From assembly GCA_965112735.1 (NCBI GenBank), contig OZ218952.1, forward strand, positions 496,001-560,000: 64,000 bases of DNA, read 5' to 3'. The DNA comes from Phaeosaccion multiseriatum. Lineage: Eukaryota; Protista; Ochrophyta, other classes. Shown in pieces: positions 2,474 to 64,000 of the stretch (within the stretch, counting starts at the first letter, position 1; each line of letters starts with the position of its first letter). The notes under the pieces are model-generated. The model made no database searches. It saw nothing but the letters and a program-made list of their open reading frames with translations, and was not told the origin of the DNA. Made by a program: the position numbers and the translations under genes.

Positions 2474-6270
<3,797 letters not shown>

Positions 6271-15182: not shown

Positions 15183-15310
15183 GTCTGCTATCGCCGGCGC
15201 GACGGGGCGTGCTATCTGCTATTCGCCGGCGCCAGCCGGCGTGCTATCTGCTATTCGCCGAGTGCAAATAGCATGCTATTGGGCGCCGGGGCGCCCAATA
15301 GCATGCTATC
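15183..15310. repeat. Right subterminal TGCTAT repeats and hairpin (ATAGCATGCTATTGGGCGCC-GG-GGCGCCCAATAGCATGCTAT)
   Basis: Same unit as the left end, in direct orientation, followed by a ~20-bp-stem palindrome at ~15268-15309. Confidence 0.8.
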
Positions 15311-20156: not shown

Positions 20157-20191
<35 letters not shown>

Positions 20192-20873: not shown

Positions 20874-20907
<34 letters not shown>

Positions 20908-23900: not shown

Positions 23901-25410
23901 GGCCAAGGAGATTGTGCAGATTCTCAAGCGGAGAGAGGGAGGAGGGGCGGAGGCGGCAGGGGGGGGAGGAGGAGGAGGAAGAGGAGGAGGAGGAGACGGT
24001 GAGCAACAAGGGGGAAACGTCAGCACGGGCACAAGCACTGGCAACGCAGCAGAACAGAGCTCCTCTCTGCCTCTGGCGCTGCCGCTGATTGTGCCTTGTC
24101 ATGTGCTCGAGAGAGCAGATAGACTCCGTCAGAAGCGACGGCGTGCGCGCAGGTCCAAGAAAAAGGGCGCAGCTTCCAAGAAAGCACCAGCAGGCCGCGA
24201 AGACGTGGGAGAGGAGAAGAAGGAAGGAGGGGGAGGGGGGGACCAGGGGGAAGGGGGGGGGGAGGAGCAAGAGGAAGAGGGGGGTAGGAGAGATGGTGGA
24301 GGGGCGGGTGGTGCCAGAGGAAGTGGTGGTGCTTTTCTGTCGGCTCCTTGCTCCCCCACCTCATCAATCTACTCCCACTCCTCTGTGGCGGTGTCTGAAG
24401 TGGTCTCTGAAGTTGTATCCGAGGTGGTGATCGACAACGTGACCGACAACACCAACAGTGGCAGTGGCAGCACTAGTGGGCGCACCAGCCTCCCCAACAA
24501 CAACACAGATGCCGACGACTTTCGAAGGGTGACTTCGTGCGTCTTGGCGGAGCTGCCCCGTATTCAGGAGCAAGACCTCCTTGATGTGGATGTCGAGGGG
24601 CTGCAGTTGCGATGTGTCAACGCCGACCCCAATTACGGCTCCATGTGGTTCCACTGCCGCGCTCGCCCCTCGGACACAGCCAAGTCTGTCTTGACGGCTG
24701 CCAAAAGGGTCATGGCGAGGGAGCTGTGTGCGTTTCAAGACGTGTACCTTCAGGCCATGGTGAGAAGGATCAAGATTGAGGAGGAGGTGCAGGCGTATTT
24801 GCAGGCGGAGTACGACAAAACAGCAGCAGCAGCAGCAGCAGCAGCTGGTGATACAGCATCAGTTGGTGATGGCGGTGACGGTGGTGGCAGCGACGGTGAG
24901 GAACGCCGGCGAAGGGCGGAGAGGAGGGCGGAGGCGCGGCGGGACAGTCTGCTCGCTGTCGCTGCTCGCGCTGCACCAGCCTTGGAGGGGCGAAGGCCGA
25001 GTGGAAGCAGTGAGGCGGATGCCGCCGCTGCTGCTGCCGCTGCTGCCGCTGCCGCTGCTGGCGGTCTTTCTGTCGACGCCAAAGCCGCGGAAGAAGGCGA
25101 AGGGAGCACTATTAAAGAGGGAGGCAATGCGGGTGATGGTGATGATGATGGTGATGGTGTGCCGCAGGAGGCGGAGGACAAGGAGGAGGAAGGGAAGGAA
25201 GAAGAAGAACAAGAAGAACGTGAACAAGAACAAGAACGAGGAGGAGGAGGAGGAGGAGGAGGAGGAGGAGGAGACATTTTCGACGAGGTGTGCAAAGAGG
25301 ATTTTATGACCGGTCTGGCCAAGCTCAATCGCGTTACCTCGTGCATGAGAGATTTGTGCGCGGAGGAGCGGAGGAAGCTGCTTTTCGGGAGCGACCAAAT
25401 CGTTCCGTAA
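18046..25410 (+). CDS. Large protein with Q/G-rich disordered N-terminus and HAT/TPR-like helical repeats; intron 22185-22413; apparent frameshift at G14 run 18451-18464
   Basis: Repeated W-L-E..K-L-E / WKV.LE..LLE.R helical units (QGWLEFSKLEE, WKVWLAGARTE, WKVFLESVLLE, PKSGEVWCEGAR); the downstream frame stays open back to the G-run. Confidence 0.8.
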
Positions 25411-30054: not shown

Positions 30055-31713
30055 ATGGTGAAGTTTGTGCAAGTTGCCGCTTTGGTGGCGTGCGTCGCGG
30101 GCGGTGCCCAGGCTTTCGTCACGCCCACCCTCACCACAAAGGTCCCCATGGCCAAGCCTCAGCAGCAGCAGCAGCAGCAGCAGCAGGCCAGGCGAAGCGT
30201 GACCACCATGTCTTCTACCTTCGAGAACGCCACTGGCGAGTTCACGGCCGCATACAAGCCCTTCGCGGCGTCTGGATGGGGACCCTCCGTCAAGGCTGAG
30301 CGATGGAACGGAAGGTACGTTCGAGCAGGCCCCAGAGCAGAGAACATGGAAAGGAGAGGCGAAGCAGCAGCGAGCTACAAAGGAGGGCAGGAGACGATGA
30401 GAGCGAGGAACGAGAGAGGGAGGAGAGACTCTGAAGTTCCGCAATCCAGCCCAGGGGACCGGAGGAGAAAAGACCACAGTCGTCAGTGAGAGAGCAAATT
30501 CAGCATTTGGCCGGATACCGTGTGCGTACGGGCTGTTGCGCCGCCGTGTTCTGAGTCATTCAGTGACTGGTGTCTCTCTCTCTGTAGCGGGGGCTGGCTT
30601 TGCGCGTTCGAAGGCGCAGTCTCGGATTTGAGGAAAGAACACAGCGAGGAACAGGAGAGGAGTGGTTCGTCGCTCTCCCACTCAGAGCCCCCTCTAACTT
30701 TCATCTCTCTCCTCTCCCTGCTGCTGCCTCCCTTGCACTCGTTGAAAACAACTTGTTCTTTTCCTTTTACCTTCGATGGCGATCACACCGTGGCTGGACG
30801 GCGTAAACGCTGGATTGGTGTGGCAATCTATCGGTCGGGGTTTGTGTGTGTGTGCTCTTGCGGGGCATTACGTCCTTCTTGTCATTAATCAAAAGGCACG
30901 CCATGTTCGGCTGGGTGATGATCATCGGCAGCGCCTACGCCAAGGCGCACGGCCTCATCCCCGACGCCGAGACCGCCCTTAGCTTCAAGGACTGGGGAAC
31001 CCTGGCCATCCTTAATGGACCGGATAACATGATTACCAACGAGCGAGCGGTCATTATGATTGCGCACGTACACGCCCTTATGGTGTCGGTGTGCGCCACC
31101 ATCGCACCCCTGTCCTTCCAGGACAAGCTGCTGCTGGAGAAGGGAGAGAAGGACGAGCCCATGCAGGGCCTCATCCCCAAGTTCGTGCCCGGAATCACCC
31201 CCGAGGCGGAGATGTTCAACGGACGAATGGCCATGCTGTAAGTTGTGTATGTTTCGAGCGTATCGAAACATGTGGGTGTGTGTGTGTGTGTGCGTGCGTC
31301 TGTGTTTGTTTGTGCGTGCGTGCCTACGGGCCTGGTGTCGGTGTCTTGTCTCTACGCGCACGCGCACAGTGTATCTGTGTGATGACAAGGGGACGACTGG
31401 CTGGCTGACCGGTCCCGATTGATCTGAAGCGCTTTGCCCGTCAAATGGAATGGCCTGTGGGCGGGGCGTGGGGGGTAGGTGGGTGAATGCATGCAAGGAG
31501 CCCTCTGTGTGTCGTCTTCCTTTACCGCTCGGTTCGCGTAGCTGCATCTTTGACCCCGACCCTGACCTCTCTCTCTCTGCTTCCCTCTCCCTCTCCCCCT
31601 CTCTCTCTTTCGCTTCTCACAGCGGACTCGTCGCGTTCTCTGTGCACTGCCTGTCCACCGGAACCCCTTTCCTTGAGGCCGTCAACACCAGCCTGGGAGG
31701 CCTCCTCATGTAG
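30055..31713 (+). CDS. RedCAP: RedCAP (red-lineage chlorophyll a/b-binding-like protein); exons 30055-30314, 30896-31237, 31623-31713
   Basis: Signal peptide with AQA|F cleavage motif; GWGPSVKAERWNGRHAMFGW, AYAKAHGLIP, WGTLA..ITNERA, EAEMFNGRMAMLG. Confidence 0.9.
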
Positions 31714-35935: not shown

Positions 35936-38900
35936 ATGTCGAGGGACAACAATGGCAGAGGAGGTGGACGGGATCGAGACAGCAGGGACGGAAGAGACAG
36001 CAGGGATCGGGATCGAAGCAGAGACCGTGACCGGGATCGTGACCGCAGCCGTCATCGTTCCCCGGGAAGAGACAGCGGCGGCAGAGACAGAGACGGGGGA
36101 GGGAAAGGCAGGTCATGGAGAGACAGCGACAAGAGCTCGTCCTATTCCTCGTCCTCCTCCTCCATGTACAAGGGACGCCCCTCCTCTACTGCAGACCGAT
36201 CGGGTGGGGGCGGGGGACACGGCAAGCGGAGCAGGGAGGAGAGGGACCGAGAGAGGGAAAGGGACAGGGACAGAGACGGAGACAGCTATGGCAGCAGTGG
36301 AAGCGCGAGGGGAGGCGGGCGGGGGGGCTCCCGAGAGAGAAGTCCTGCACGCTCGTCCAGAGACGAGAGCAAGAAGGCGAAGAACAGTAGCCACCACTAC
36401 CAGAGGAGAAGTAGCAGCAGCAGCCGCAGGGCCAGTAACGAGGACCAGGATAGAGGGCGGGAGCACAAGCGACATCGCACACAGGAGGACGGGCGCCGGA
36501 GGTCTTCTTCCCACTCGCGCTCTTCCTCGAGAGCTTCTCCCGCCTCCGGGCCCAAAGTGTCGAAGGTCTCGGCGTCTTCCCCACTCAAGCCCGCGGCTTC
36601 CTCAGGCGCAGGAGAGAAAGACAAGCAGCGCGGCGAGCGACCCGCTTCTTCTGCTGCTTCCTCCTCCACCTCCTCCTCCTCCCCAGCCTCTACCTCCGGA
36701 TCCAGGGTCCAAGACGGGGCGAGTGCGGGCGCCTCGGCGCAGTCAGTGTCGCCTTCATCCAAACCGGCATCAACGGATTCGGCGACAGTAGGCAAGGCTG
36801 CCACTCCAATACAAAGGCCAAGTGCAGCAGCAGCAGCAGCAGCAGGAGGAGGAGGAGGAGGAGGAGGAGGAGGAGGAGGAGGAGCAGCAGGAGCAGGAGG
36901 AGCAGCAGCAGCAGCAGCAGCAGCTGTGGCGCGGTCAAGCTCGTCTTCAAGGCCTTCACCAGGGAAAGGTGCCTCGGGAACTGCAGCCACGGAAGCTTCA
37001 CCTGCTGAGTCGCATCAGAGCAAGACCGAAGCTTCCAAGAGCAGCGGCAGCAGTGGGGGTGGTGGTGGTGGTGGTGGTAGCCACAAGGAGGATAAAGCTG
37101 ACAAAGCCAGTCGGAAAGGGGGGGATAAGATGGATAACAAGGGGAAGGACAAGCACCAATCAGCTGACAAGGAGCAGGACAGAGCCAAGTCCAAGGGCAG
37201 CAAAGACAGTGGCGGTGGTAGTGTCAATAACAGCAGCAGCAGCAGCGGCAGCAGCAATAGTGGAGGTGGCGGTGGTGGTGGTGGCGTACCAAACAACAAC
37301 AAGAGCAACAGCAACAAAAACAAGAACAACAACAACCTCAACAACAACCTCAACAACAACAACACCACCATCACCACCAACAACAACAACACCAACACTG
37401 TTGGCGACGACGCGGAGGACGTCCTGCCCCAATTTGAAGCCATGGATATGATTCCCCGCGGAGAGAATACGCTGGAGTGTGACTACTGCCAGAGGGACAT
37501 CTCCTCTGCCTGCCGCATCCGCTGTGCTGTGTGCAAAGAGTTTGATTTGTGTGTGGAGTGCTTCTCCGCGGGAGTCGAAATCAAGGTGAGCACGACCGAG
37601 CGACCGAGCGACCGAGCGAGTGAGGGGCAAGAGGAGAGGGAGGGCAACGGGGAGGAGAGGGGCGGGGGGCATGCGGGCGTAGGAGGGCAGGCAGGCAGTG
37701 CCGGGCAGAGCACGTTGTCGCCTGTTTGTTGGCGGCTTACTGGAGGATTTTCTCCGCGCCCTTCTCGCTTTCTGATCTCTCTCCCGTCTCACCCTCTCCT
37801 CCCTCGTTCCCCTCCCTCCCCCCCCCTCCCCTCCCCTCCCTCCCTCCCTCTCCTCCCTCCCCCCCCCCTCCCTCTCTCTCTCTCTTCACATGCACAGGGG
37901 CACAAGAACTACCATCCTTACCGCGTGGCCGACACTCTCAGTTTCCCCATCTTCACCGAAGACTGGAGCGCCGGAGACGAGCTGCTCCTCATTGAGAGCA
38001 TTGGCAAATACGGCCTGGGCAACTGGGAAGACATTGCTGCCCACTGCAACTTCTCCAAATCGAAGAGCCCCAAGCAGCTCAGAGATCACTTCTTTGAGGT
38101 GTATTATAGTAGGCACGGTTCCGTGCTGCCTCGGGAAACCATCGATGTCACACCCCGTGGGGAGGTGAGAGGCAGAGAGGGCGTGTGTGTGCGTGTGTGG
38201 TTGTGTGTGTGTGCGTGTCTGCATGTGTGTGCGTGTGTGCATGTGCGTGCGTGCGTGTGTGCGTGTGTGGTATCTGTGTGTGAGGAGAGAGCCCTGCTGC
38301 CCCCTGCCCCACCCTCCCCTTCCCTCCTCGTGCCCCCTCCCAACCCGCGGGGTTGTAGCCTACCCTGTGACTGAGCAATCAAACAACCAACACACCAACC
38401 AACCTCCTATACCCACTCAACTCACTACAGGTGGAGCGTCACCCCGTGCCCCCTCAGGGGGTGGGCAAAGCCGCCCCTGGAGGGGAAGACGGAGACAAAG
38501 CCGCCCCCATACTCTCCTCCGAGTGGGCAGTCAAGAGTATGCCGGAACTCAGGGCAGCGGCAGTGGGCCCGGATGGGACTGCGGTGAAGGTGAGGAAGGG
38601 AAGGGAGAGGGGAAAGGGAAAGAGGGGATAAGACGGTAAAGGGTTGTCACCGTCACTAGTGTCACACGCACGCATGCACGCACACACGCACACACGCACG
38701 CACTCATCAAGCCGTGTTAGCTCCCCTGGGACTCTCGTTGCTCTCGCTCACGCCGCTCTCCGCCTACTTCGCTTCGCTTTGCGCTGCTTGCCTCTCACCT
38801 TTGCTTTGCTTGCCTAACCTCGCCTTTCCTGGGCTTGTTGACCTCAGCACGGAGAGGGATCGTTCAGCGACCCCGGAGCCGCCGCCCCGCCAGGTAAGCC

Positions 38901-39529
38901 TTACGTAAGCCTTACGTAGCTTGTGTCACTCGCCGTGTCTGCCCTACAGCCTGTTTTCGCCCTCCCTCCTTCTCTCTCTCTGTCTCTTCGAGGCCGGAAG
39001 GAAGCTAATCGCCTCTCAGCAGCAGCTCCCTCACCCCACCTCTGCTCCCCTCCCCTCCTCCTCCTCCTCCTCCCCCCTCCTCCTCCTCCTCCTCCTCCCT
39101 CCCTCCCTCCCCCCTCCACTCCTCCTCCACCCCTCCCCCTCCTCTGAAGGCATGTCGCACAACGAACTCATTGCGAGCCTCCCTGGAGCGGAGCTGGCGG
39201 GCTACATGCCCCTCAGAGGAGACTTTGATGTGGAACACAACAACGACGCGGAAGCCATACTCGCAGACATGGACTTTAGCCCAGATGACCACCCCTCCGA
39301 GAAGCAGCTGAAGCTCGTAAGTACATTGCCTCCACCCCACCTCACCCCACCCCACCCCACCCCACCCCATCTCTCGAGACTTCTCCTCACTCTCTCTCGC
39401 TTTCTTTCTCTCTCTCCCTACCACCCCTCCGAGAAACACATCTCATGGTCGGAAGTGCAGTGCCTCTGCCCCACCCCACCCCATCCCATCCCACCCCTCG
39501 AGGCTTGGTCGAGCCTTCCTGTCTCTCTG

Positions 39530-39585
<56 letters not shown>

Positions 39586-40946
39586 TCCCTAACCCTTGCC
39601 TACCTCCCTACCTGCCTGCCTGCCTACCTGCCGGCCTGCCTGCTGTCTGGTCTCTCGCGACACAGGACATTATCGCCATTTACAACAGCAAACTCGACGA
39701 ACGAGACAAGCGCAAGCGCTTCGTTAAGGAGCGCGGCCTGCTTGACTATAAGAAGCAGCAGCAGGCAGAGCGACGCCGACCCAAGGAGGAGAGAGAGCTA
39801 GTGGCTCGCATGCGTGTGTTTGCTCGCTTCCACAGCAAGGAGGAGCACGAGGCCTTTGTGGACGGTTTGCTCAAGGCTCGGCGGCTGAGACGCAGGATCG
39901 AACAGCTGCAAACGTACCGCCGAATGGGTCTGCGTACCTTGGCGGAGGGGGAGCAGTATGAGGCAGAGAAGAATCGCAGAGCGGATGCACAGGCAGCGCG
40001 TAAGCATAGGGAGAGTGCTTCGTATCTGTACGAGTCGGCGGGCAAGGCGTCCGGGCCGAGGGAGCGCACAAGTCGTTACCTCAATAGGGACAAAGTGGAC
40101 CCACAGCAGAAGGAGGGGCAGGGGCAAGACGGTCAAGGAGGCGGAGGAGGCGGGGAGGGAGGGGGAGGAGGAGGGGGGGGAGGAGCAGACGGGGGTCACG
40201 GTGGAGGAGAGGGAGGAGGTGGGGAGGGAGGAGGGGGCAGCAGCAGCGGAGTCGGAGGAGGAGGTGGTGACCGGGCACGGGCGAGCGATCGGCCTCCGAT
40301 GAACTTGACCGATGCTCCTGGGGTGGAGCTGTTGACAGCGCGGGAGAAGGAGCTGTGCAGTATCCTGCACCTGCTCCCTAAGTACTACCTTGTTGTCAAG
40401 GTGAGGAAGGGGGAGGAGGAGAGGGAAGGAGGGGGGAGGAGAGAGGAGGAGGGGGAGGAGGAGGAGGAGGAGGAGGAGGAGGAGGAGGAGGAGGAGGAGG
40501 AGGAGGAGGAGGACGCCGGGCGATTGTTGAACAGTTCTGAGGTGCCGCCAATGCTTCTCTCCGTACCCCTAGTAGAATAGAATGCAGCCCAACGGTCTTG
40601 AGGCCGGTGACCAAGCAATTGCTGAGCCCTTTGCCCCCGTCTTAAATCCCACTTTTGCCATTCTCCCCCCCCCCCCCCCCCGTCTCTCTCTCTTTATCTC
40701 GCTCCCGCCCCTTCCTCGCTCCCCTCCCGTCTGGCCCAACTCAAACCTCCAGGACGCATTGATCCGCGAGAGCTTTCGTCAAGGCTACCTGGACAAGTGT
40801 CAAGCACAGCAACTCGTGACCATGTCTATCTCCAAGACGGCTGATGTGTACGACTTTTTCGTGTCGTGCGGGTGGGTCAGTGCCGCCCCAGAGCCGCTCA
40901 ATCCCCCTCCTCTGGCTTCTGCGCACCGACACCACCACCAGCAGCA

Positions 40947-42303: not shown

Positions 42304-45300
42304 ATGGGAGGGGACCTGGGGGGGGGACCAGTGTTCTCCCCTTATTCTAAAGTAGTACAGCACTTCAAGAGGCGAGCAGTGGGTACAAGTGGCAACCAGG
42401 GCATGCCTGTCAGTCGAGGAGGAGGAGGAGGCGGAGGAGGAGGAGGAGGAGGCGGAGGAGGAGGAGAGTGTGATAATCGTGGAAATGGATACATGGGGGG
42501 GCGGCTGGCTAAGGGCAGAGGAGGTGGCAGAGGGACTGGAACAGCAGCAGTGGCGGGGGCAGGGGCGGGGACGAGCGGACGGCGCTCCCCAAAGTGGCAG
42601 CAGCACCTGAAGGGACTTAGAGCGAGACATTTCTCCCGACGGAGGATCCTAAGGACGCTGACGATACTATTTGGTGCGTTGGTACTGGGCATTGTAATCG
42701 TTCGCTCTGTGGGGCGCTATTTCAGAGGGTACAAGGTGGCCTGGAAGGGCGGACAGTGCAGCAAGAGAAGCAGGGAGGCCAAACGCTTCCCATGGAGCGC
42801 AAGCGACCTCGATGAGATTGAACGAGTGGCACGCTCATTGTCTGCGGAGACGGCTGAGGAAGCGGGTCGACACGGAGACGGCGGCGGACCAATAATGACT
42901 CTGCGGGACGTGGACCACAAGGTACCCGGCGCGATTAGTCATATATGCGCATGCCGAGCGGAAACCTGGTACGGAGCGGCCACTTCGATTGCCGAGGTCT
43001 TGGCCTTGCGAAAGAAGGAGGCGGGGGCGATGCTTGCTCAGTACAGGGAGGGGAGCTACTTCGTGGCGGCGAATCTCCACGACAACGCTGCCGTTTTCCC
43101 CAGCTGGCAGAGGGAGTTGGTGAAGCTCGTTGCCATGCTGGAGAACGTCGACGGTGGCAATGTGTTTGTGTCTATTTATGAGAGTGGCAGCACAGACGAT
43201 ACCAAGCGTCTCTTGCGCCTCCTGGAGAAGGAGCTGACCGCAATGGGTGTACCGCACTCTGTCCAAACCACCGATGTGGTGAGGGGGGAGGGGGAGGACC
43301 GCATCCCCTTCTTGGCTTCGATGCGGAACCGCGTGCTACAGCCGCTGTACCAGAGCAGCAGCACCTTTGACCAGGTGCTCTTTCTGAACGATGTGTACTT
43401 TTGTGCGGAGGATATGCTCTCACTCGTCCACCAAACCAGAGGCGACGAGGAAGAGCCAAGAGGAGGAGGAGGAGGAGGAGGAGGGTGGGGTGGTAAGGGG
43501 AAGGGTAGCAGCGCAACGGCAAGAACCAGGGAGGGTAGGGGCGGGGGGGCGGACATGGCGTGCTCCACAGACTGGATTGGCAAGAAGCCGGGTTGCAAGA
43601 ACTGTGCAGACTTTCGCCTGTACGACATTTGGGTAGGGATGGACGTGGATGGGTACAAGTTTATGAACGAGCCACCGTACATTCACCACCGGACAGGGAG
43701 GAAGCGTTTGAAGGAGGGTCACCCTTTCCAAGTGTTTTCGTGCTGGAACGGCATGGTGAGCATCGACGCCGACATATTCCAACAGGACTTGCTGCGAATA
43801 CGAGCCGGCCGGGAGGGTCTCGAGTGTGCGGCGTCCGAGTGCGAGCTGCTGGCAAGAGACCTGTGGGAGATTGGGAGGGGCAGGGTGGTGGTGGTACCGT
43901 CGGCGGTGGTGGCGTACGACTTTAGCGTCTTTGTGGACAAGCCGCGGCACGAGGTGCAGCTGGGACGAAAGGCACCGATTCGTGGGTACCAAGACGTGTA
44001 CCCCAAGAGGCTGGTCTGCTGTCCCTTGCCCAAGGGACAGGACTCGTTTGACACATGCTTCGATGACACGGTGTGGAGGGCAGTGTATTCCATCGATGGT
44101 GTCCCTCGGGCGGCGTCCAGGGGGGACATGGAGGCCACCACAACCACACGGAAGGAGGAGAGGGACGACGCCAACAACGGTAGGGACGAGCGGTCGAGAG
44201 ACTTGACCTTCCACGATATGGCAGCGGGCATGAAGAGGGAAGGGGGTGATGAGTTCACGTGTAGTAGAGCGCAAATGGCGGCAACGAGACAAAGGCTGAG
44301 TGAGTACGCCATCCCGCCCCTCGTCATGCAGAGCGGGCGTTCGAACCTCGTCGCGGATTACTCTTTTGAGGTACTGCGGGGGCCCATCGCGTGGATGAGT
44401 CTGCACCCTTGCTATGACTTTGTGTTTTTGGACGACGCGACGATACATGCCTTTGTGCAGGAGCACTACCCACAGTTCTTGCCCTTGTTGGAGTCGTCGT
44501 CAACACCACCTCTGGGCAAGGAGCGAGAGGGAGAGGGGCAGGGGGAGAAGGAGAAGGAGAAGAAGGAGACGCGGTTGTCAGATGCAGCAGGAAAAGTGAG
44601 GAACGGAGGAGAGCTGGCGGACTTTGCTCGCTACCTCTTTATGTTCCACATGGGAGGGGTGTACGCCGACATTGACACGTTGCCAGTGCGACCCATCTCG
44701 GGCATGCTGGACCCCATGGATACGTTTGTGGTGGGGCTGGAGAGCGACTTTACCTCCGACGACAAGGCGAGAGAGTGGGCCTATGCACGGGCGCGCTCAC
44801 TCTCCCTCCACGCCTTTGCCGTGGCGCCGAAGAACGATATCATGTGGAAGGTGGTGACGAAGGTGGCGGGCAACCTCGCGGACCCGCGGGGGGTGTATGA
44901 GGAGGTGCATCGGAGGGCGAGGGGCTCTGCACATCACTTGGAGACGATTTTTAAGACAGGGCCCGGCGTGTTTACGGACGTTGTGCTCGGCGCGGCCGGC
45001 GCCGGGGTGGTGGTCGAGGCTGGCGATAGTGGCAGTGTTGGTGGTGCTGGTGCTGATGAGAAGAACGAGGACAAGAAGGATGTCGTCCGGCTGTTGGGCA
45101 TCCCCGCATTTTCGTCCGGACATGTGCGTGGTAAGGACTTTTACTCCCTGCAGCGGCCCTCCTCACTGTCCAACTGCCCCACCTTTGTGCAGCACTTCAA
45201 CCTCGGCACTTGGCTGCGGTCTTGCAGGGGCAACACCATGCGGGCAGTGGCGTATGATTACATGCCGAGCGACACGTACTTGCAGACGGGGCAGTGGATG

Positions 45301-46357
45301 GCAGTGCATGTCAAGGCGTTGGCGTGGAGGGAGGAGCCGCTGTACGTGTACCCGCCGCTGTCGCGTGGGGCAGCCGGGGAGGGTGCCGTAGACACAGAGG
45401 AGGGGGAGGAAGAAGGAGGACCCTCCTCTGCTCTCATGTTCCTGCAGCTGTCTGCAGAGGGCTTTCTCGTCGCATGGCAAGGCTTGGGTCCCTTGGACCC
45501 CAACGCGAAAGAGATGTGGCGATTACCAGATCGGAATACGCGACCAATAGGAAGAGAAGGAGGTGGAGGAGAAGGTGAAGCAACAGCAGCAGCAGCAGCA
45601 GCAGGAGCAGCAGCAGCCGTCGGTGATAAGGCAGCATTTGCAGCGCTTCACGCCGCCAAGGAGGCAGAGGCGGAGGGGACGGGAGGGAAGGTTGTGCACT
45701 TCCTCCACCTGGAGGAGGGCGGAAACCTCTCTCTGCGCTTCTTTGTGGAGGGTGACTACTGGGATCAGGCCGCCTGCAAGAGGAGTATGGAGGAGAGCGT
45801 GGCGCTGTGGGATGCGAGTTGGTTGTCCGGTGGCCCCGGTGGTGATGGTAGTGGTAGTGGTGGTGGTCGTCAGGGCGGCGACAAGAAGGAGGGGAAGGGA
45901 AAGAACAAGAAGAAGGGCTCCGGTGGGGGAGGTGGTGGTGATGGAGGGGGCTACTTTGCCGTCCTGCGACCCGACGGCCGCCTGGCCACTTATGCAGGGA
46001 GGCGGCCCCTCGATCTTGCGTGGGAGCGCTATTTCCCAGCGGAGCAGGGGTTCTGCCAACACCCACACGACGAGGAGCAGCAGGAGCAGCAGCAGCAGCA
46101 GCAGCAGCCTTCGCAGTTGGTGATACAGCGGTGGCAGGGACAGGGTATGCGGCCGGGAGACTGGCTCGGCTCTGGGGAGGTTGCCGTGTTGCCATCACGC
46201 TTTGACAGCGGGAAGGTTGGCGACGGCTTGGCCCTCGTGCAGCACCACCACGGCGCCCTGTGCGCACACCACAGCAGCTACAGTAGCACCCTCCTCTCGT
46301 CCCTCTCCCTCAAGGAAGACGCAGCGTGGGGTAGGGGGGAACCTGCCGGCGCGACCG

Positions 46358-46396
<39 letters not shown>

Positions 46397-46926
46397 TGGT
46401 GGTACAGCAGCAGCTTGGGGACCTCAGCGCGGCTGTGTCTCAGGGCACGTCCCGGCCGTTTTGGTGTGCCACACGGGACGACCACACCGAGGCGAGCGGC
46501 AAGAAGAAACGGGCAGACGTGTATGTAACCGCCCTGCAGGAGGACGGAAACCTCTGCACCTACCTCAGTCGAGTTGGGGTAGACACCCAAGCAGCTCCAG
46601 TAGACGACGTACTAGACGGGGACCCAACAGCAGCAGCAGCTTCTGTACGGAGCCGTGGCGGGGGCAAGCATGAGCGAGAGAAGCATCATCATCATCGTCA
46701 CCACCTTCCTGCCCCTCCTCAGGAGGAAGTTCTGTGGTGTGCCTTCCCCGCCTCCTCGGCACTTCCACCGGGGCTGGCGGGGGTGTCTGTGGTGGTGCTG
46801 GCCTGGACACCGGGGCTCTTGACGTCAAGGCCGGCCCTGCAGTGGCTGGATGAAAGGGGGGGCGTCATTGCGGACTATGCCCTCAGTCGGGCCTTCTTTG
46901 GAGGGACTTATTACGCCAGCACCTGA
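42304..46926 (+). CDS. Intronless 1540-aa type II membrane glycosyltransferase fusion: CAP59/GT69-like mannosyltransferase + GT32 (OCH1-like DxD) + bulb-lectin-like C-terminus
   Basis: GT69: AANLHDN, VFVSIYESGS.D, FLA..RNRVL.PL, LFLNDV, YD.W, VFSCWNG, SEC.L. GT32: ADFARY..GGVYADID, TGPGVFT. Lectin-like: LEEGGNL, LRPDGRL, LQEDGNLCTY. Confidence 0.82.
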
Positions 46927-49704: not shown

Positions 49705-50134
49705 GTGCTCTCAGCCACCACAGGAAAGTGGCTGCCTCATGCTCTCTCTCTCTCTCTCTCTCTCTCTCCCTTTCTCTCCCTCTGAAGAGGGGATGTTCGT
49801 TGCCGCCCGTGATGAGAACCTCCTCTTTTTCGACGCTGACCGTTCTTCTTCGATTCAGACACTGTCTTCCTCCATCACCTTGTTCGCTACTTCTCCGCTG
49901 CTCCTTCTCTGCTGGGAGAAGGTTTGAAGCTTTGTGAGAGAGTGTCAAAAGAGTGTCCTTCACCTGTTGGTGATTCAGGTTATTCTCGTTTATATCCTCC
50001 TTTCTATAAGGCAAGTTCCTTCTATAAACCCGCACTCCTCCAAACCTAAACCCTCGTTTGCGCTTTTGCATCGAGGTGGGCCGACAGTCGTGCAGCGCAG
50101 GACGGCGCAAACTCAGCGCATGCTGCATACAGCC

Positions 50135-53100
50135 ATGGTGGACGTAGAAACGCAGGACCTTAGCGTAGAAGCGCGGGAGCGTGCGGCACTCGAGGCCTTC
50201 AGAGCCACAGGCGACGGAGAGGGATGGCAAATGATAAATGGATGGAACCAGGCCCACATACCTCTACGGGAGTGGGATGGAGTTGGGGTACATGAGAATG
50301 GACATGTGGTGAGTCTCAACCTTCATACCAATGGGATCATAGGTAAGAAGGGAGGCAGGAAGGGGGAGAGGGGGGGGGGGGGCGGGAGATCGATGAGCAG
50401 GGCTGAATGGGCCGAGGCTAATATATAGCGGAGGCAGTGACTTGGGGCTTGCACTGCTGGATTGATGTGCGATTGTCTTTCAGAGTTTGGAGGGTGGGGC
50501 TGCGTATGAACAAGAAGAACTTTCCCTCCTGTATGGTACAGGGAGCATTCCGTCAGAGCTGGGAAATGTGACCAACTTGATGTCTCTTGATCTCAGCTAA
50601 TTGCTACGAGACCATCGGAAGGTTTGGGTCACAGCAGAGTATTTAGGGAGTGGATGGGGCTTGATGTCTGTAGTGCATTAAGTACCAAGTTCTCCCCTGC
50701 CCCTTGCCCATTCCGTCCGAGTTGGGGCGGCTGACCAATTTGACACACTTTCACCTCTGCAGAAACAGAACTAAGCAGTATAGACCATCGAAAGGTTTGG
50801 GTCACGGCAAAGCACCTTATTTCTATTTGGAGGGAGGGATGGGGCTTGATATTTGTCGTGCATGCATGACCAAGAGCTTTTCCTCCTCAACGCAGGGCAC
50901 ATTCCATCGGAGTTGGGGGAGCTGACCAACTTAAAGACCCTAAACCTCGAATACAACGAGCTCACAGGTAAGTGGCACCAGACCATCGGAAGGTTTGGGA
51001 CTGAAGGATGGGGCTTGATATTTGTCGTGCATTTATGACCAAGAGCTTTTCCTCCTCAACGCAGGGCACATTCCATCGACCTTGGGGAAGCTGACCAACT
51101 TAAAGACCCTAAACCTCGAATACAACAAGCTCACAGGTAAGTGGCACCAGACCATCGGAAGGTTTGGGACACGGCAAAGCACCTTCTTTCTTTAGGATGG
51201 GGCTTGACATTTGTCGTACATGTATGACCAAGACCTTTTCCTCCTCAACGCAGGGCACATTCCATCGAAGTTGGAGGAGCTAGCCAAGTTAGAGGTCCTA
51301 AACCTCGGCCACAACAAGCTCACAGGTAAGTGGCACAAGACCATCGGAAGGTTTGGGACACGGCAAAGCACCTTTTTCTGTTTGAGGGAGGGATGGGGCT
51401 TGATATTTGTCGTGCATGTATGACCAACAGCTTTTCCTCCTCAACGCAGGGCACATTCCATCGGAGTTGGGGAAGCTAGCCAACTTAGAGTTCCTAAACC
51501 TCAACGGCAACACGCTCACAGGTAAGTGGCACGAGACCACCGGAAGGTTTGGGACACATCTTTTTCTTTTTTTTGTGTAGGATGGGGCTTGATATTTGTC
51601 GTACATATTGAACAAGAGCTTTTCCTCCTCAACGCAGAGCACATTCCATCGAAGTTGGGGAAGCTAGCCAACTTAGAGACCCTAGACCTCAGCAGCAACA
51701 AGCTCACAGGTAAGTGGTATGAGTCCATCGGAAGGTTTGGGACACGGCAAAGCACCGTATTTCTATTTGGAGGGAGGGATGGGGCTTGATTTGTCGTGCA
51801 TGTATGACCAAGAGCTTTTCCTCCTCAACGCAGGGGGCATTCCATCGGAGTTGGGGGAGCTAGCCAAGTTAAAGCTCCTAAGCCTCAGCAACAACGAGCT
51901 CACAGGTAAGTGGCACCAGACCATCGAAAGGTTTGGGACACGGCAAAGCACCTTCTTTCTAATTTGGTGTAGGATGGGGCTTGATATTTGTCGTGCATGT
52001 ATGATTAAGAGCTTTTCCTCCTCAACGCAGGGGACATTCCATCGAAGTTGGGGGTGCTAGCCAAGTTAAAGAAGTTCGGGGTGCCAGCCAAGTTAAAGTC
52101 CCTATACCTCGACAACAACGACCTCACAGGTACGTGGCACGAGACCATCGGAAGGTTTAATTTGTCGTGCATGTATGACCAAGAGCTTTTCCTCCTCAAC
52201 GCAGGGCACATTCCATCGGAGTTGGGGGAGCTAGCCAAGTTAGAGATCCTAAACCTCAACAACAACGCGCTCACAGGTAAGTGGCATGAGACCATCGGAA
52301 AATTTGTCGTGCATGTATGACCAAGAGCTTTTCCTCCTCAACGCAGGGCATATTCCGTCGGAGTTTGGGAAGCTAGTCAACTTAGAGAGCCTAAACCTCA
52401 GCCGCAACAAGCTCACAGGTAAGTGGCACCAGACCATCGGAAGGTTTGGGACACGGCAAAGCACCGTATTTCTATTTGGAGGGAGGGATGGGGCTTGATT
52501 TGTCGTGCATGTATGACCAAGAGCTTTTCCTCCTCAACGCAGGGAGGATTCCGTCGGAGTTGGGGCGACCGCCACAGTTGAGAAAGCTTGACCTCAGCGA
52601 AAACGAGCTCACAGGTAAATGGCACGAGACCATGGGAAGGTTTGGAACAGTGATTTGTCGTGCATGTATGACCAAGAGCTTTTCCTCATCAACGCAGGGC
52701 ACATTCCATCGGAGTTGGGGAAGCTGACCAACGCGTGGCAGCTTTGGCTCGGCCACAACCAGCTCACCGGTAAGTAATAGTAGGCGAAACAAGGCGCATT
52801 GACTTGATCGCCTGTGACCAAACTCCACAGGGATTCGTTTGCCTCGCCTCTCGTGTTTTCTCACAGCTAACCTCCTTGTTTTTCAGGATTTGATAGGGCG
52901 AGGGATGTTTCCATTGAGGCTCTCGGAGCTCTGCTGGATGCGAGGTTAGAAAGCTTCGAGGGCAATCCGTTCACTTCCCCCCCGCTGGCCCTCGCGGGAA
53001 ACAGAGAGGCCCTCAAAACTTACTACGAGGACCTGGACAGCTCCGATGCACCAACGGACTTGAAGATTGCAAAGGTCCTGCTCCTCGGGCATCAGGGGAT

Positions 53101-56100
53101 CGGGAAGACCAGGTGAGCGTGGAGGGAGGGAGAGAGGGAGGGAGGAAAGGAGGGAGGGAGAAGGGGGGGGGGGCGTATGCTCGGAGGCTGCATACGTGCG
53201 TGCGTGCGTGCGTGCTTGTGTACCTTTGCATTCCTTCACACCCCTGCAAGCCGGTACGTGTGACCGTCATGCCTCCAAAAGCCGCCGATTTCCTTGACTC
53301 TCCGACTTGTTTAGTGATTTAAAAAGTACTTTCTGGACCTGGCTGTAATGCTATTCCTGTCGTTGAAACCCCCACCTCAGTCTGATGCAGACATTAAAGA
53401 ATGGAACTCCGTCTCGAACACGGGGGGAGATGGCCTCCACTGTAGGGGTGGGTGCTTCTGCTTGGCACTCTGAGGGGGATGAAGGGTCAGCAACCACCTT
53501 CACTGTGATTGACTGCGGAGGGCAAGCCTACTACCACGCTCTGCATAGGATTTTACCGGCGCATGAGGCTTCTCTTCTCCTCCTGTGGGATACCAAGACG
53601 TTCTGGGACGAAGAGGGAGATTGGGACGAGCTTCTGAGGAAGCAGGCGGGGCCCTGGGCGAGGTTGATGACTGACATGGGGAAGTCGGCGACTTTGTCAC
53701 TCGTAGGGAGTAGGATTGACCTGCTACCGTTGCTCAGCTGGAAGAAGCGATCCTTCAACTGGAGGAAGGCAAGCTTGCTTGACCTTGCAAAGAGGGTTCG
53801 AGAGGGCACGAAGGCGCTGCTTGTCGAAACAGGCTCGTCGGTTGTTTTGAAGGACGACATGCATCTGACCAGCTGTACGGACAGTCGGATATCGAAATGG
53901 TTTGGACATGAAGGGAAGGGCATCAAGGAGCTCAGAGAGAGGCTGGAAGGCATGGCATCCCGTCGGAAAATTGGTGACGGCTTAGCACAAGCTTTGCGTG
54001 CAGTCAGAGAGCGGGGAGAGGAGACGCATCAAGCGGGCAGAATCCTCGAGAGCATTGCTGAGATTGGGGGGAGTGTGCGTCAGAATAAGAAAAGCACGTG
54101 GTTCAGAGACAAGACTCTAAGCGAGCAGGAGGCTATGTTGAGGTGTGCTCTTCAGATGATGTAAGTGCCCTGGGGGGGAGAAAGACCGCGCAGCTTGCTG
54201 CTTCTTTGCTTCCTGTTCAATTGACTTTCCTGTCCCTTTTCTCTCGTCGTTTGTCTCTTCTGTTCAGGGAGAAGGAGGGGGAGGTGATTATCCTCGGGGA
54301 CGTGACGCAGGACGAAACTCTCGTGATCCTTAACGCGCAGTTCTTCGCCTCCATCGTCAGCCCCCTCCTCACACCCAGGCAGAAAGTCTTGTGGCCGAAT
54401 GAGAAAGACAAATACGTTCATCTGGATGAGGTAGGCATCATAGCTTTTCTTGCTCTCTTTGATCTGAACGAACGCACGTACAAGAGCGCGCATTCTCTGA
54501 TCGTTTTTGCTTCGTTTCTCTCCCTCTCCTGTTTATTCGCATGACTTTTGGCTTTCCAGGTCACTCCCCGTCGACAAACAAGTCCCTATAATTCTGGGAA
54601 TGAAGATCTGTGTGGAGTGCAGAATCTCGTCAACCCCTTGCTAGGACTTGTGGGCCACTCTTTCCTCAAGTCGTTGTGGGAAGGTGTCTTGTACTACCCA
54701 ACAAACCCGACTTCCGTGCTACCCGACGACGTGGTCACGAGCATGGTGGAGAAGCTCAAGACTCTCGATATCCTCTTTCCCGCGAGCCCCCTCGCCCTGC
54801 CCCAGCTTCGAGATGTTCCCCTCGGGGAAGAGAAGCTGTATCAAGTTTCGTGGCGCATGCCTGATGTCAGGGAGGAGCACGGCGAAACATTCGGTAAAGA
54901 GATTCAAGACAAAGTTCAAGGATGGTGCAGCGAGCTTCGACAATTCAAAAGTACGACAAAGCCGGCTCACGTTCTTCTCAATTGGGGCATCGAGGTGGAG
55001 GTGAAGTATGAACGGCCACTACCATCGGGGAGCGTGGAGGAGTTCGTAGCAAGGCTTGCGAATGGGGGATTGGGTCAAGCATCCTTGTGCTGGAAGCAAG
55101 GCGCGTGGTTCGTCCGAGAGGCTCAGTACTTTGCATGCTTGATGTACAACGAGGAATCCAAGGAGTTGGTCCTGCAGGCCTTTGGTGACTGGAAGGGGGG
55201 TGAGCGCGGCGCCCCATGGGCCGTAAGCTTTATGCTTCATCATGCGCCACACAGGAAGACGGTGAAGACGACTTTGAAGTGCCCCTTCTGTGCCAATCGA
55301 GTGGATGTCAAACAAAAGGTAAGGCTTGATGCGTCGTCCCAGCACAACCATTACTGAACCTCAAGTCGACTCTTCTTTTTGTACAGGGAGTACTGGGGTG
55401 TCAACTGGCTTGTCATATCGGGGATGAGCAGCAGGAGAATTGGGAGACCCTACAGGTCATCCGCAGTCTACCGGGGCCACTCCAAGATGGAGGGGATGCC
55501 CAGCGAAAGGACTGGGAGGATGCCTGGAAGGATGCCTGGAAGGCGCAGCGGGATCGAGCGCAGGACTTCAGCGACTATGTGAGTGTTTTTTTCGTTTTTG
55601 TTTTTTTAGTAAATTAAATGATTGTCTTCAGTGGATATTGTATGTTGCGTATCAGTAGATGATGTTGGATGGTGTCATGGCTTTTTTTCCAACAGCAGTG
55701 CCAGTCAACCTTTTCCCCCCCTATCACGCAGACACTCTACGCGTTCATCCTCTCCTTCTTTGATTGACTTGTTAGCTAACAGCAAATCCTCCCCCCCCTC
55801 CTCCTTAATTTTGATTTTGCGGTTTTGCGTCTCTGCAGCTTCAGGAGCTTCAGGCCCACACGCGCAGTGTGCTCACCATCGACATACCTTCCCCCCCCTC
55901 CTCACCAGGCCGTGTCCAAGGGCAAGAAGGGGGGTTGTCCAGCATATGTTCCAGCGTGTGTCCGTGGTTGTTTGATGGCATGACTTTTGGGGTCGAGTTT
56001 GGTGCAGTTGTATCAGTCTTGCTTGCAGGTGCAGGCATTCAGTGGTATTTTAAACCCATGCTTGTGACATGGGTGTTCATGGGCATCGTGTTTTTTGCAG

Positions 56101-56159
56101 CTGTATTTGCTTGGAAACGCCAAAAGAGGCTAAGGTCCGAACATCAGAAGCAGCGGTGA
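50135..56159 (+). CDS. ROCO-family protein: LRRNT cap, 11 one-exon LRRs, ROC GTPase, COR-like region, two C-terminal TM helices
   Basis: Cap ERAAL..W..W.GV..GHVVSLNL..N; GHIPSELG.L..L..L.L..N.LT repeats; G1 GHQGIGKTS, G2 STVG, G3 DCGGQ, G4 SRID, G5 TSC; downstream exons splice in frame to stop 56159. Confidence 0.88.
50542..52769 (+). repeat. Tandem exon-intron array of LRR cassettes (72-nt exon + 70-125-nt conserved intron)
   Basis: Exons 50896-50967, 51065-51136, 51254-51325, 51450-51521, 51638-51709, 51834-51905, 52031-52129 (99 nt), 52205-52276, 52347-52418, 52543-52614, 52698-52769; introns GTAAGTGGCAC...CTTTTCCTCCTCAACGCAG; degenerate copies at 50542 and ~50704. Confidence 0.95.
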
Positions 56160-59066: not shown

Positions 59067-62000
59067 TGCACTGTGTGCTGTGATGCTGTGATCTTTTCGT
59101 GTTGGACTGACTGACCTGGGTGTTCGTCAGAAGTCTCGAAAATCTGTCCATTGCCGTACATCCACACCCCCACCAGCACCTCCAACAGCAGCAGGTATGG
59201 CATTAGGCTCAACAGCCCCAAGATAACATCACTCGAGTACTGCGGCGGGATGCGGTAGATGTGAAAGAACATGAACTTCTCCACCCAAAAGAAGGTAAAG
59301 AAGGCGATGGCAGCAAATGGCAGCAGCACGGGGATACCCGGGCTGTACATGAGGCACACGGTGAAGATCATGCCAATATCGGTGTAGCGAGCCTGTCAAT
59401 GGGGTAGTGGTGGTGGTGGGGGGTGTCAGGACGAGGGAGGTGGCAGTGGAAATTACCTAACGTGTCACGTGTGTGCTTACGTAAGCACTTCGTACGTACC
59501 GATACATCCCACGAGATGCCCATGGCGAGGCGATTGAGCTCCTCCTGAGACACCGCCGAGGCCCACTTCTTCGTCCACCTGATCCCAGGTACCGTTACCA
59601 GAGGGACGTTATGGACGTTATGGACGTTACACATGTTACAGAGAAAGACACGACGTGTATGCAGTTATCAGGTTGGAAGTCGTTTATCAGGCCGGCACAT
59701 GGGTATGAGGCATGCATACGGGTATGAGGCAGTGTGTGGGGTATCGTACACTGGGGTAGCTAGGCAAGGTACAATAGGAGAGAAGATGGTCGCATTGCTC
59801 GGGGGTGGGACAGGAGTCAAGATGTCAAGAGGTACGGCGGAAGGTCGCTTCTTTTCCCTGCTCTGGAATCCCTCGGTTCGCCTATCAGCGCCGCCTCCCT
59901 CCCTCCCCCAACCCCCTCCTGTCTCCCAAGATGAGGATGGGAGTGAAACCACCGCGACTATTTCCTCGGCAAACAGATCTGTACAGGGCAAGGCACGCAC
60001 ACACCCACACCATTCCTCCCTGCCTCCCACCCACCCTCCCTTGCCCACTTACCCTCTCAGTCTCAGTAAAAAGTTGAATGTGACGGCGGCGTGAGGGATG
60101 AAGGTGTTCATTGCCATAGTCAGCATGAGGGCCGCTCCCGAGCTTCGGTACCAGCTAATGCTGAATGTCTTTGGGGTGGAGCATGATGGAGGCGTGTGGG
60201 AAGGGGAGGAGGGAGGGAGGACATCAGGACATCGCACAAGACAGAGCGTCAAACCGAAGCTCCGAGAAGCGACATCAGCATCGTCCTAGTCCAGACAGTC
60301 GAGGCAGAGACAACGTTCGGAATTGACAATAGAGGAAAAGGTTTCTGGCCTGCAGTGCATTTGCTTCGCCTGCAGCCAGCTCAATTTGGCGTACTCACTA
60401 ACTCACTCCTTCACCCCCTCACTCACCACGCCGTCGTTGGCAAGGTTGACTCCGAAGATGGCCGTGATGATGGTGCTGTAGGCGATGAGGCTACTCACGG
60501 CGGTGTTGATGAGCTTCAGCACGAGAGAGCGCTGGAAGATGGATAGCTCCATGAAGTTTAGAGATGTTTGCTTCTCTGTTGGTGGTGGGGAGGGAGGGAG
60601 GGGGGGAGAGAGAGAGACGGAGGGAGGGAGGGAGAGAGGGAGAGAGGGAGGCAGAGCAAGGGAGCGAGAGAGGGAAGAAGATGAAGGGAGGGGGGATATC
60701 AGACAAAGAAGGCATCCGTTTGTTGAAGTCACTGGCGCCCTAGCACCGCGGCAGAGGGGAGTGTCGCAGATCTGCCAACTCGCTCAGAGAAGCATAAGGG
60801 TGGAGGGTAGGACGACTGGGAGCGTGCACGGAGGAGACGAGAGGAGAGGAGACGCTGATACAGGCAAACCTCTCGCTTTCCTTTCAAAGTAGCGTAAGGT
60901 AGCGGAAGGGCACGTCAGCGTGATACCGTCGTGTGACGTGATAAATTCCCCCCAAGTAGTTGTACACGTGGTCATAACGTACCGAACGGGGCGATGACCC
61001 GCAGCAGCTTGGAGAAGCACACATTGACAAACACCACCATGAACGAACTCATCGTGGTGAGCAGCACCGACAGGAGCAGCGCCTTGACATACGAGTAGCA
61101 CACGTCCGAGGTCCCGGATAGCGAGGTCAGACTCTTGGAGGCGCAGTAGCAATGCAAGATGGTGTCGTCCTCATTCACCGCCTCCAGCTTCTCCGCGTTG
61201 GAGTAGTCGGACCAGGCTGCAGGGCACTCCGACTCTCCGCCCTCGGTCTGCACATTTGCCTGATACTCGAGGGCCTCGAAGGTCATGTACATTGAGGAGA
61301 GCAGCAGCCCCACTGCCAGGCTCATCGTAGCAGATCGACGCCAGAACACTTGTTATTTGAGGTTGTTGTTGTTGGTTGTTGTTGTTGTTGTTGGCGGTGG
61401 TGGTGGTGGTGGTAGTAGTAGTGGTGGTGGTGGTAGTGGTGGTGGTGGTGGTGGGGGTGGTGTGGTGGGAGTGGTGGAGACAAGCAGGTCAGATTCAGCA
61501 TAAGTATACACACACTGCCAAGCACCTACACCAGCAAGCACAAGCACGAGGAAAGCATATGCCGTTAGATCCTTCTCCTCCTCCTCCTCCTCCTCCTCCT
61601 CCTCCTCCTCCTCCTCCTCCTCCTCCTCCTCCTCCTCTTCCTCCTCCTCCTCCTCCTCCTCCTCCTCCTCCTCCTCCTCCTCCTCCTCCTCCTCCTCCTC
61701 CTCCTCCTCCTCCTCCTCCTCCTCCTCCTCCTCCTCCTCCTCCTCCTCCTCCTCCTCCTCCTCCTCCTCCTCCTCCTCCTCCTCCTCCTCCTCCTCCTCC
61801 TCCTCCTCCTCCTCACCTTCCCAGCCCCTGTACCCGAGGTTTTCCCACAGGATGGTGGTGGGGGGGGGCGCCCTCCGTGCAGAGATGCGGTGCCCTTTGA
61901 AACGCAGTTGGGGCTTCATGCAGAGCCAGCGGAAGATACTGAGGGGCGAGGAGGAGAAGGAGGAGGAGGAGGAGGAGGAGGAGGAGGAGGAGGAGGAGGA

Positions 62001-64000
62001 GAAGGAAGAGGAGGAGGAGGAGGAGGAGGAGGAGGAGGAGGAGGAGGAGGAGGAGGAGGAGGAGGAGGAGGAGGAGGAGGAGGAGGAGGAGGAGGAGGAG
62101 GAGGAGGAGGAGGAGGAGGAGGAGGAGGAGGAGGAGGAGGAGGAGGAGGAGGAGGAGGAGGAGGAGGAGGAGGAGGAGGAGGAGGAGGAGGAGAAGAAGA
62201 AGAAGAAGAAGAAGAAGAAGAAGAAGAAGAAGAAGAAGAAGAAGAAGAAGAAGAAGAAGAAGAAGAAGAAGAAGAAGAAGAAGAAGAAGAAGAAGAAGAA
62301 GAAGAAGAAGAAGAAGAAGAAGAAGAAGAAGAAGAAGAAGAAGAAGAAGAAGAAGAAGAAGAAGAAGAAGAAGAAGAAGAAGAAGAAGAAGAAGAAGAAG
62401 AAGAAGAAGAAGAAGAAGAAGAAGAAGAAGAAGAAGAAGAAGAAGAAGAAGAAGAAGAAGAAGAAGAAGAAGAAGAAGAAGAAGAAGAAGAAGAAGAAGA
62501 AGAAGAAGGAGGAGGAGGAGGAGGAGGAGGAGGAGGAGGAGGAGGAGGAGGAGGAGGAGGAGGAGGAGGAGGAGGAGGAGGAGGAGGAGGAGGAGGAGGA
62601 GGAGGAAGAGGAGGAGGAGGAGGAGGAGGAGGAGGAGGAGGAGGAGGAGGAGGAGGAGGAGGAGGAGGAGGAGGAGGAGGAGGAGGAGGAGGAGGAGGAG
62701 GAGGAGGAGGAGGAGGAGGAGCAAGAGGGTTGTTAGTATGCATTGCATCGAGTGGCGAGGAAGGGAGGGGGTGGAAGGAGGAGAGGCGAGGGGAGGAAGC
62801 TTTGTGCGTCTGAATGGGTGCCTTACATGGCCACTCTCTCACTCACTCACTCCCTCCCTCAGTCACTTACTCCCTCCCTCCCTCCCTCCCTCCCTCCCTC
62901 CCTCCCTCCCTCCCTCCCTCCCTCCCTCCCTCCCTCCCTCCCTCCCTCCCTCCCTCCCTCCCTCCCTCCCTCCCTCCCTCCCTCCCTCCCTCCCTCCCTC
63001 CCTCCCTCCCTCCCTCCCTCCCTCCCTCCCTCCCTCCTTTCCTCCCTCCCTCACTCACCTGACGCGGTAGCTCGCGATGGCATTGAGAGCTCCTTGCTCC
63101 ATCTCGAAGGTGATGTAAGCCGTAACGGGGGTCGCGTGGTGATCATCGTCCAGCTTAAGACGCTTCGCCTCAGCCATCTTGTCGATGATCTGGAGGCAGA
63201 TTTATAGAGGCGTATGGAGGCATACCGAGGCAAACGGGGCCATAAAGAAGGGGGGGAAGGAGGGAGGCGGGAGAGCGGGTGATGGGCAGGTACATGAACA
63301 TGCATATGGGCAGGCATATGGGCAGGCATATGGGCAGACAGACAAAGTAGGCATGTTCTGACCCCCATACGAGCTTACCTGGCGAGAGAGCTGGGTGCGT
63401 TTGTCTCGTATCTTTGTCTGTTCCACCGGAGAAGCGCGCACAGACAAACACACACACACACACACACGTACGCATACACAAGGATGAGGATTCCTCCAAG
63501 CACAGGCATGGACATGTCTTGTGGGACACCCGAGGGACGGCCAAGTACCCTCTCCCCCTCCCCCTCGCATCCACTGCCATCCTCACCTTCGCCTCCTCCG
63601 TATGCTTCGACTTGTTCACAGTATTGTAGAGACGCAGCTTGTCCATCAGCCTTGCCCTCTCCTTGTGAAGCTTTCCCGCCTTTCCGTAGTGGGCGATGGC
63701 TGCTCTGTTGTCTCGCCCGATAGACACCTCACTCACAGCGCACCCTGTAGGGCATATGGGAGGGATACGGGTAGTCAGGAGTCCAGGCAGAGCAGGTATA
63801 TGGGTGGTCATTCCATCAATTTCAGTTTAAGTTCTAGTCCAGGCAGCGCGTGCACGGGCAACCAACGCAAGCCAAGCCAAGGTAAGCTAAGGAAGCTTAG
63901 CTTAGCGGAGATGATGTTGGGTGAGGAGTGCGAAAGCGAGTGAAAGGCGAGACAGAGAGGGTGGGAGGGAGAAAGAGAGGAGGGGGAGAGAAAGAGAGAG
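57032..64000 (-). CDS. OSCA/TMEM63 (CSC1-like) mechanosensitive cation channel, 5' part outside the window; >=10 exons
   Basis: AYITFE, RAPPPTTILWENL, FEKQTS....E.SIF, INTA, WY..G, SQEELN, MYSPGIP.L.P, FWVEK....YRIPPQY; multiple TM segments. Confidence 0.85.
58050..58203 (+). repeat. Intronic (CTTTG)n pentanucleotide microsatellite
   Basis: gctttgcttt run. Confidence 0.9.
61576..61813 (+). repeat. Intronic (CCT)n microsatellite
   Basis: Near-perfect run. Confidence 0.95.
61948..62721 (+). repeat. Intronic compound microsatellite (GAG)n-(AAG)n-(GAG)n
   Basis: Near-perfect purine run of ~770 bp. Confidence 0.95.
62870..63051 (+). repeat. Intronic (CCCT)n microsatellite
   Basis: Perfect run. 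Confidence 0.95.

Follow-up and report, generated by a model that had tools for sequence, protein, structure and literature searches.

An 18-exon gene extending from position 50120 to 56159 on the plus strand of the 64-kb stretch of DNA analyzed here (the window) could be modeled as an open frame of 1,160 codons, with no stop and no frameshift, joined across 17 canonical introns. The model was built from the sequence alone by using canonical splice sites, and homology searches were run exon by exon. The predicted domain order is an N-cap, an LRR array, a divergent Roc GTPase, a weakly COR-like region, and two hydrophobic segments at the C terminus. The first exon (50120..50342, +) starts with an ATG at 50120 or 50135, and its open frame ends at the sole GTRAG donor within 50343-50895, which is a phase-1 donor. 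Neither a Pfam match nor a homologue was found for this exon, which probably encodes the LRR N-cap, as judged by its position and by analogy to the genes described in PMC3341825.

The initial annotation had described 11 LRRs, each in an exon of its own, and indeed all 11 exons, bounded by AG and GT, were found within 50896-52769 on the plus strand. LRR exons 1 (50896..50967), 2 (51065..51136), 3 (51254..51325), 4 (51450..51521), 5 (51638..51709), 6 (51834..51905), 8 (52205..52276), 9 (52347..52418), 10 (52543..52614), and 11 (52698..52769) are 72 nt long, and LRR exon 7 (52031..52129) has 99 nt owing to an internal 27-nt duplication (25/27 identical) on the predicted convex side. The introns flanking the LRR exons are all phase 1, which makes every one of these exons phase-1/1. 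Since the exon lengths are multiples of 3 and all junction codons start with G, any subset of LRR exons stays in frame without a stop at a junction, as had been claimed. The junction codon of exon 5 encodes Glu, not Gly. The list of repeat motifs given earlier had ten entries for eleven exons, with exon 2 left out. The consensus GxxPxxLxxxxxLxxLxLxxNxLx on a symmetric 72-nt exon is that of the brown-algal type I genes. No two units are identical, and the pairwise difference between exons ranges from 5 to 28 nt, with exons 1 and 2 differing at 5 positions. Exon 10 is divergent and has homogenized introns on both sides; exon 11 is a divergent terminal repeat.

Downstream of the array, the exon at 52887..53112 (+) encodes a linker and the Roc P-loop, GHQGIGKT, which is completed by an S across the intron. 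This exon aligned with the pre-Roc helix and the P-loop of a Nostoc Roco with a pairwise E value of 0.005. The exon at 53381..54160 (+) encodes the body of the Roc GTPase, with the motifs STVG, DCGGQ, GSRID, and LTSC, and the start of the COR-like region. Its match to Pfam Roc had an E value of 4e-4, below the curated cut-off, for an exon that does not include the P-loop. The top matches of the Roc exon in the ESM Atlas were Roc clusters (0.94), and its pairwise alignment with the Nostoc Roco gave an E value of 8e-7. The motifs G1 to G5 can all be read in the sequence, and the gene thus has the Roc GTPase domain of a ROCO; Pfam, the ESM Atlas, and the exon-wise alignments with the Nostoc Roco together bear out the ROCO identity that had been proposed for the GTPase part. 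Binding and hydrolysis of GTP may be expected of the predicted domain. A word-index search, which sees only proteins of similar length, gave no homologues of the Roc exon, a full HMMER scan of this exon returned one match, to a spurious repeat, and a comparison with the PDB returned nothing relevant. A single-sequence AlphaFold model, calculated with no alignment, reached a pLDDT of 35. Exact DNA scans of metagenomes for the intron motif and for the exon-intron-exon pattern gave no match.

Evidence for COR is weaker. The exon at the COR-A position (54268..54430, +) has an open frame and resembles COR by eye alone, with no Pfam match and no pairwise match to the Nostoc Roco; the exon at the COR-B position (54560..55318, +) gave a weak pairwise match (E value of 0.066) to the COR-B part of the Nostoc Roco. 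Exon-wise searches of Pfam, NCBIfam, and the ESM Atlas did not return COR after Roc. Among brown-algal ROCOs, the COR profile is matched by 18 of 111 (PMC11378527). The gene continues with an exon of unknown fold (55387..55578, +) that has an open frame and canonical sites. The predicted last exon (55839..56159, +), whose acceptor was placed from sequence data only, encodes two hydrophobic segments with hydropathy peaks of 1.75 and 2.24, followed by a basic tail and the stop TGA. This exon likely serves as a membrane anchor.

The LRR exons are separated by ten homologous introns (50968..52697, +) of 70 to 125 nt with consensus-like donors, a shared pyrimidine tract, and CAG. The window has 10 occurrences of their 33-nt acceptor motif, against an expectation of 0. 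The introns had been described as nearly identical at both ends. This is true of the ends, but the homology runs over the full length apart from indels: introns 1 to 10 differ by a mean of 8% at aligned sites, and the indels lie in the middle, where two haplotypes and three deletion forms can be distinguished. The intron after LRR exon 11 is unrelated to introns 1 to 10. If intron 7 (52130-52204, 75 nt), which is in frame and free of stops, were retained, LRR 7 and LRR 8 would be separated by 25 additional residues; with each of the other array introns, retention leads to a stop or a frameshift. The compactness of the units had been taken to suggest that the system may extend to, or have arisen in, another lineage, but short introns are common to the whole gene, with the six introns downstream of the array measuring 68 to 268 nt, and nothing here shows an origin of the system in this lineage.

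Two decayed LRR units that the initial annotation did not contain were recovered just upstream of the array by a single-exon DNA search of the window for stray repeats. Unit A (50542..50600, +) has kept its AG acceptor but has lost the 3' end of the exon and the donor, and it contains an in-frame TAA at 50598. Unit B (about 50707..50775, +) has lost both acceptor and donor, and an intact array-type intron body lies behind it, reaching to 50895. With these two units on the coding strand, the gene also has the inactivated LRR exons within the introns of the LRR region that characterize type I. The acceptor of unit A (50510-50541) retains the pyrimidine tract and CAG. Since it still looks live, a full-length transcript must bypass it by way of a 553-nt intron, and the acceptor could be a source of mis-splicing.

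Variation among the units was said to be concentrated at the x positions of the repeat. This was confirmed for codons 15, 17, 19, 20, and 22, which show more variation than any other set of five among the 14 nonframework codons (rank 1 of 2002), but codon 14, the first x, varies only to a moderate degree. A selection test was done by allele counting rather than with a likelihood model and was confined to units 1 to 9. The five concave codons have 18 nonsynonymous alleles at 12.3 sites, or 1.46 per site, and the neutral reference of intron and silent sites has 0.23 per site, which gives a ratio of 6.3 (binomial p of ~2e-7). In the Ectocarpus ROCO exons, codons 15, 17, 19, and 20 are reported to be under positive selection (PMC3341825), and these sites were fixed beforehand from that study; taken alone, they had amino-acid-changing alleles in a 6.6-fold excess over the neutral rate (nominal p of 6e-7). 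Framework codons of units 1 to 9 had a ratio of only 0.4. Since the alleles come from 9 related units and are not independent, the p values overstate the certainty, but the roughly sixfold excess of amino-acid change over neutral at the concave codons is a strong pattern and agrees with the excess that had been predicted for the x positions. Exons 3 to 8 differ from each other by 6 to 14 nt, and there is no silent difference among codons for identical residues. Conservation of the introns (8% difference) is no higher than that of the silent exon sites of units 1 to 9 (about 6%). Exons 10 and 11, at the end of the array, are the only ones to diverge beyond their introns, with a silent codon difference of 21 to 22%.

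The suggestion that the units recombine between homologous introns was supported as far as past exchange is concerned, but this exchange was not confined to the introns, because markers reassort inside the exon as well. Two haplotypes of the intron middle alternate through introns 2 to 6, in keeping with the 384-nt period that TRF reported. In each of the 8 typed units, the haplotype of the preceding intron tracks nucleotide 15 of the exon (p of 0.029); thus, intron and exon start travel together. For nucleotides 24, 35, and 63, all four combinations with the intron haplotype are present, and exchange is thus resolved inside exons too. Moreover, introns 5 and 9 (124 nt) share their final 109 nt without a single difference, whereas the exons that follow have 22 mismatches in 72 nt. 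The silent codons in this comparison (3/15 versus 4/124; p of 0.028) also differ, and the pattern is as expected for a conversion tract limited to the intron. A PHI-like recombination test was not significant (p of 0.6 to 0.9), with half of all site pairs being incompatible at any distance. Recurrent mutation could be an alternative source of this incompatibility and also of single markers. Nevertheless, exchange among the units is well suggested by the marker patterns.

The architecture, the open frame, the Roc homology, the concentration and excess of amino-acid change, the mosaic markers, and the decayed units are direct observations. They would be accounted for by an LRR-Roc(-COR) receptor-like GTPase gene whose array evolves in the germline by duplication, unequal exchange, diversifying selection, and decay at its edge, and we consider this reading probable. 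The LRR domain would evolve as a tandem array in which units of an intron plus an exon are duplicated and exchanged, presumably by unequal crossing over or gene conversion. Such exchange would homogenize the introns, the framework, and the silent sites, and selection would keep or favor new residues at the concave codons, which are predicted to face the ligand, while units at the 5' edge would be lost through decay. With symmetric phase-1 exons, any gain or loss of a unit would be safe for the frame. The protein is probably tethered to the membrane by its C terminus, and the LRR domain would then lie in the cytoplasm. From what is known of the family, ligand binding by the LRRs may control the Roc GTPase, and the protein may have a role in sensing pathogens or in immunity.

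Exon skipping in the same gene could instead be the main source of diversity, with many LRR combinations out of up to 2,048 subsets. All of these subsets are in frame, two Ectocarpus ROCO genes have splice variants that differ in LRR content (PMC11378527), and the full-length product already needs a bypass of the unit A acceptor. Across eukaryotes, however, exon skipping tends, with exceptions, to go with weak splice sites and long introns on either side (PMC6142364), whereas the array introns have 70 to 125 nt and uniform, consensus-like sites. A special intron structure was rejected on the basis of ordinary intron folding (z of -0.9 to +0.6), and so was docking/selector splicing of the Dscam type, for which inverted repeats of at least 20 nt were absent, although shorter pairings are possible. 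We therefore regard skipping as the main source of diversity as rather unlikely. It is unlikely, too, that near-identical units recombine or skip often enough to produce many LRR surfaces in one clonal population; if they did, such a population would possess a standing repertoire of receptors, open to direct readout because the whole array is shorter than 2.3 kb. A gene that is decaying or mostly mis-spliced, with the array as a relic of earlier selection, would explain the two dead 5' units, one of which has a live-looking acceptor leading to a stop, the Gly-to-Glu change in the junction codon of exon 5, the 27-nt insertion in exon 7, the odd residues in exons 10 and 11, and the strong divergence of Roc-COR, which has Arg at the G4 position. 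This position is usually occupied by Lys. Such a state is hard to reconcile with 1,160 codons without a stop or frameshift, 17 canonical introns, and conserved framework positions, and we judge it distinctly improbable.

Programmed somatic rearrangement or targeted mutagenesis, either VLR-like or at adenines as in a DGR, would diversify the array within a clone. The variable codons do look as if derived from AAC or AAG, with 14 of 18 alleles arising at a consensus A, the homologous introns would be good sites for exchange, and somatic shuffling was proposed for Ectocarpus (PMC3341825). However, the silent adenines at codons 13, 16, and 24, right beside variable codons, are invariant in units 1 to 9, introns and other exon sites have no A bias, and the excess of A cannot be separated from an effect of first and second codon positions. 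A pool of donor cassettes, an inverted exon, and a template repeat were absent from the window, and according to Teng et al. (PMC11378527), no somatic recombinant has been reported in brown algae. A DGR target was rejected because of the invariant silent adenines and because the window has no separate template copy, and assembly of the VLR type was rejected because the gene is complete and only two decayed units lie nearby. Nothing here shows rearrangement within an individual, and diversification within a clone by such means is very doubtful. The window does contain very long simple repeats, such as one of 258 GAG copies, as might be found where an array is an assembly artefact, but all units are distinct (5 to 28 nt between exons), the changes are distributed over codon positions as under selection, and the reading frame is not interrupted. 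An artefact was thus rejected and is scarcely conceivable.

A neighboring gene gives some information on the host. The long, conserved TPR/HAT gene at 18603-25410 (+), which has a Q/G-rich N-terminal part, had its best named match in Chrysoparadoxa australica (80% over 219 residues), and the match to Ectocarpus was 70%. In a tree of this single gene, the window gene was unresolved among ochrophytes and lay outside a Chrysoparadoxa-Ectocarpus group that had moderate support (86/80). The six short introns downstream of the array are also unlike those of Ectocarpus, which are unusually long (PMC6142364). The host is an ochrophyte and probably not a brown alga, the matches and the tree contradict a green alga, and the earlier suggestion that the system extends to another lineage is upheld to the extent of this single-gene placement. 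Among the other contents of the window, a spliced gene at 30055-31700 (+) starts with a plastid leader that looks bipartite and ends in a light-harvesting-like part but has no Pfam match; we take it to resemble RedCAP. A spliced dual-specificity phosphatase at 2354-6270 (+), CDC14-like by eye from a 10-residue motif, is followed by very long GGA runs. Related tandem repeats of 31 to 32 nt at 6967-7106 and 15184-15279 enclose several long open reading frames (ORFs), like transposon ends. The spliced gene at 35936-40900 (+) looks like an ADA2-type coactivator by eye and has an RS-rich N terminus, and at 42304-46926 (+) there is a stop-free ORF of 1,540 codons with two glycosyltransferase-like parts by eye, in a window that is otherwise intron rich. 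At 61570-62721, runs of TCC and GAG/GAA comprise 82 and 258 copies and were possibly stretched by the assembly.

The design of the locus has already been published for brown algae, in the LRR-ROCO genes with type I exons (Zambounis et al. 2012 [PMC3341825]; Teng et al. 2024 [PMC11378527]), and the locus described here is a compact further example. As in those genes, an N-cap is followed by LRRs of 24 residues in a single block, with one 72-nt exon per repeat and exon boundaries that enclose 2 nt, 23 codons, and 1 nt (the "phase 2" of those studies is the same junction), Roc comes after a linker, the variable sites are 15, 17, 19, and 20, and inactivated LRR exons, here the two decayed units, lie in introns. 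The likeness to the one-LRR-per-exon design of Ectocarpus that had been noted at the outset thus extends to the same boundaries, variable sites, and dead exons. Moreover, the predicted tail resembles that of a subgroup of Ectocarpus genes whose products end in one or two transmembrane segments (PMC3341825). The differences are that the host here is probably outside the Phaeophyceae, that the introns have 70 to 125 nt and are homologous from end to end, making a clean tandem repeat, and that Roc-COR is very divergent, with no close database homologue. The 64-kb window also contains no LRR exon on the opposite strand; such exons are common but not universal, being found in 19 Ectocarpus loci only (PMC3341825). 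Shared descent with the brown-algal ROCO clade is not shown by these likenesses. Denoeud et al. mention ROCO expansion for brown algae only, and we found no report of one-LRR-per-exon ROCO genes from sister lineages of brown algae in the open-access literature; the present locus suggests that such genes are not limited to brown algae. Since the array of ~1.9 kb fits one PCR product or long read, the question of germline, somatic, or splicing diversity, open since 2012, becomes cheaply testable.

The bacterial LRR-Roc-COR protein of Nostoc (Roco, WP_114085638.1) has the same order of LRR and Roc, and its pre-Roc helix, P-loop, and ST-G and D-GGQ-YHA segments align with the gene here. It differs in having no introns and a clear COR, which is weakly matched here. 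On a Nostoc plasmid, a complete LRR-Roc-COR gene (positions 2646-5291) lies near parA and an integrase. The VLRs of jawless vertebrates share 24-residue LRR modules and a variable concave face with the present gene (PMC3341825 and general knowledge), but in their case an incomplete gene is filled in somatically with cassettes from its flanks, whereas the gene here is complete, without a pool of cassettes in its vicinity, and encodes a GTPase. Arthropod Dscam likewise has tandem exons of equal phase (PMC11378527 and general knowledge). There, however, the choice of exons is mutually exclusive and made by docking/selector pairing, for which no such complementarity was found here, and the exons of the present gene together form one continuous solenoid.
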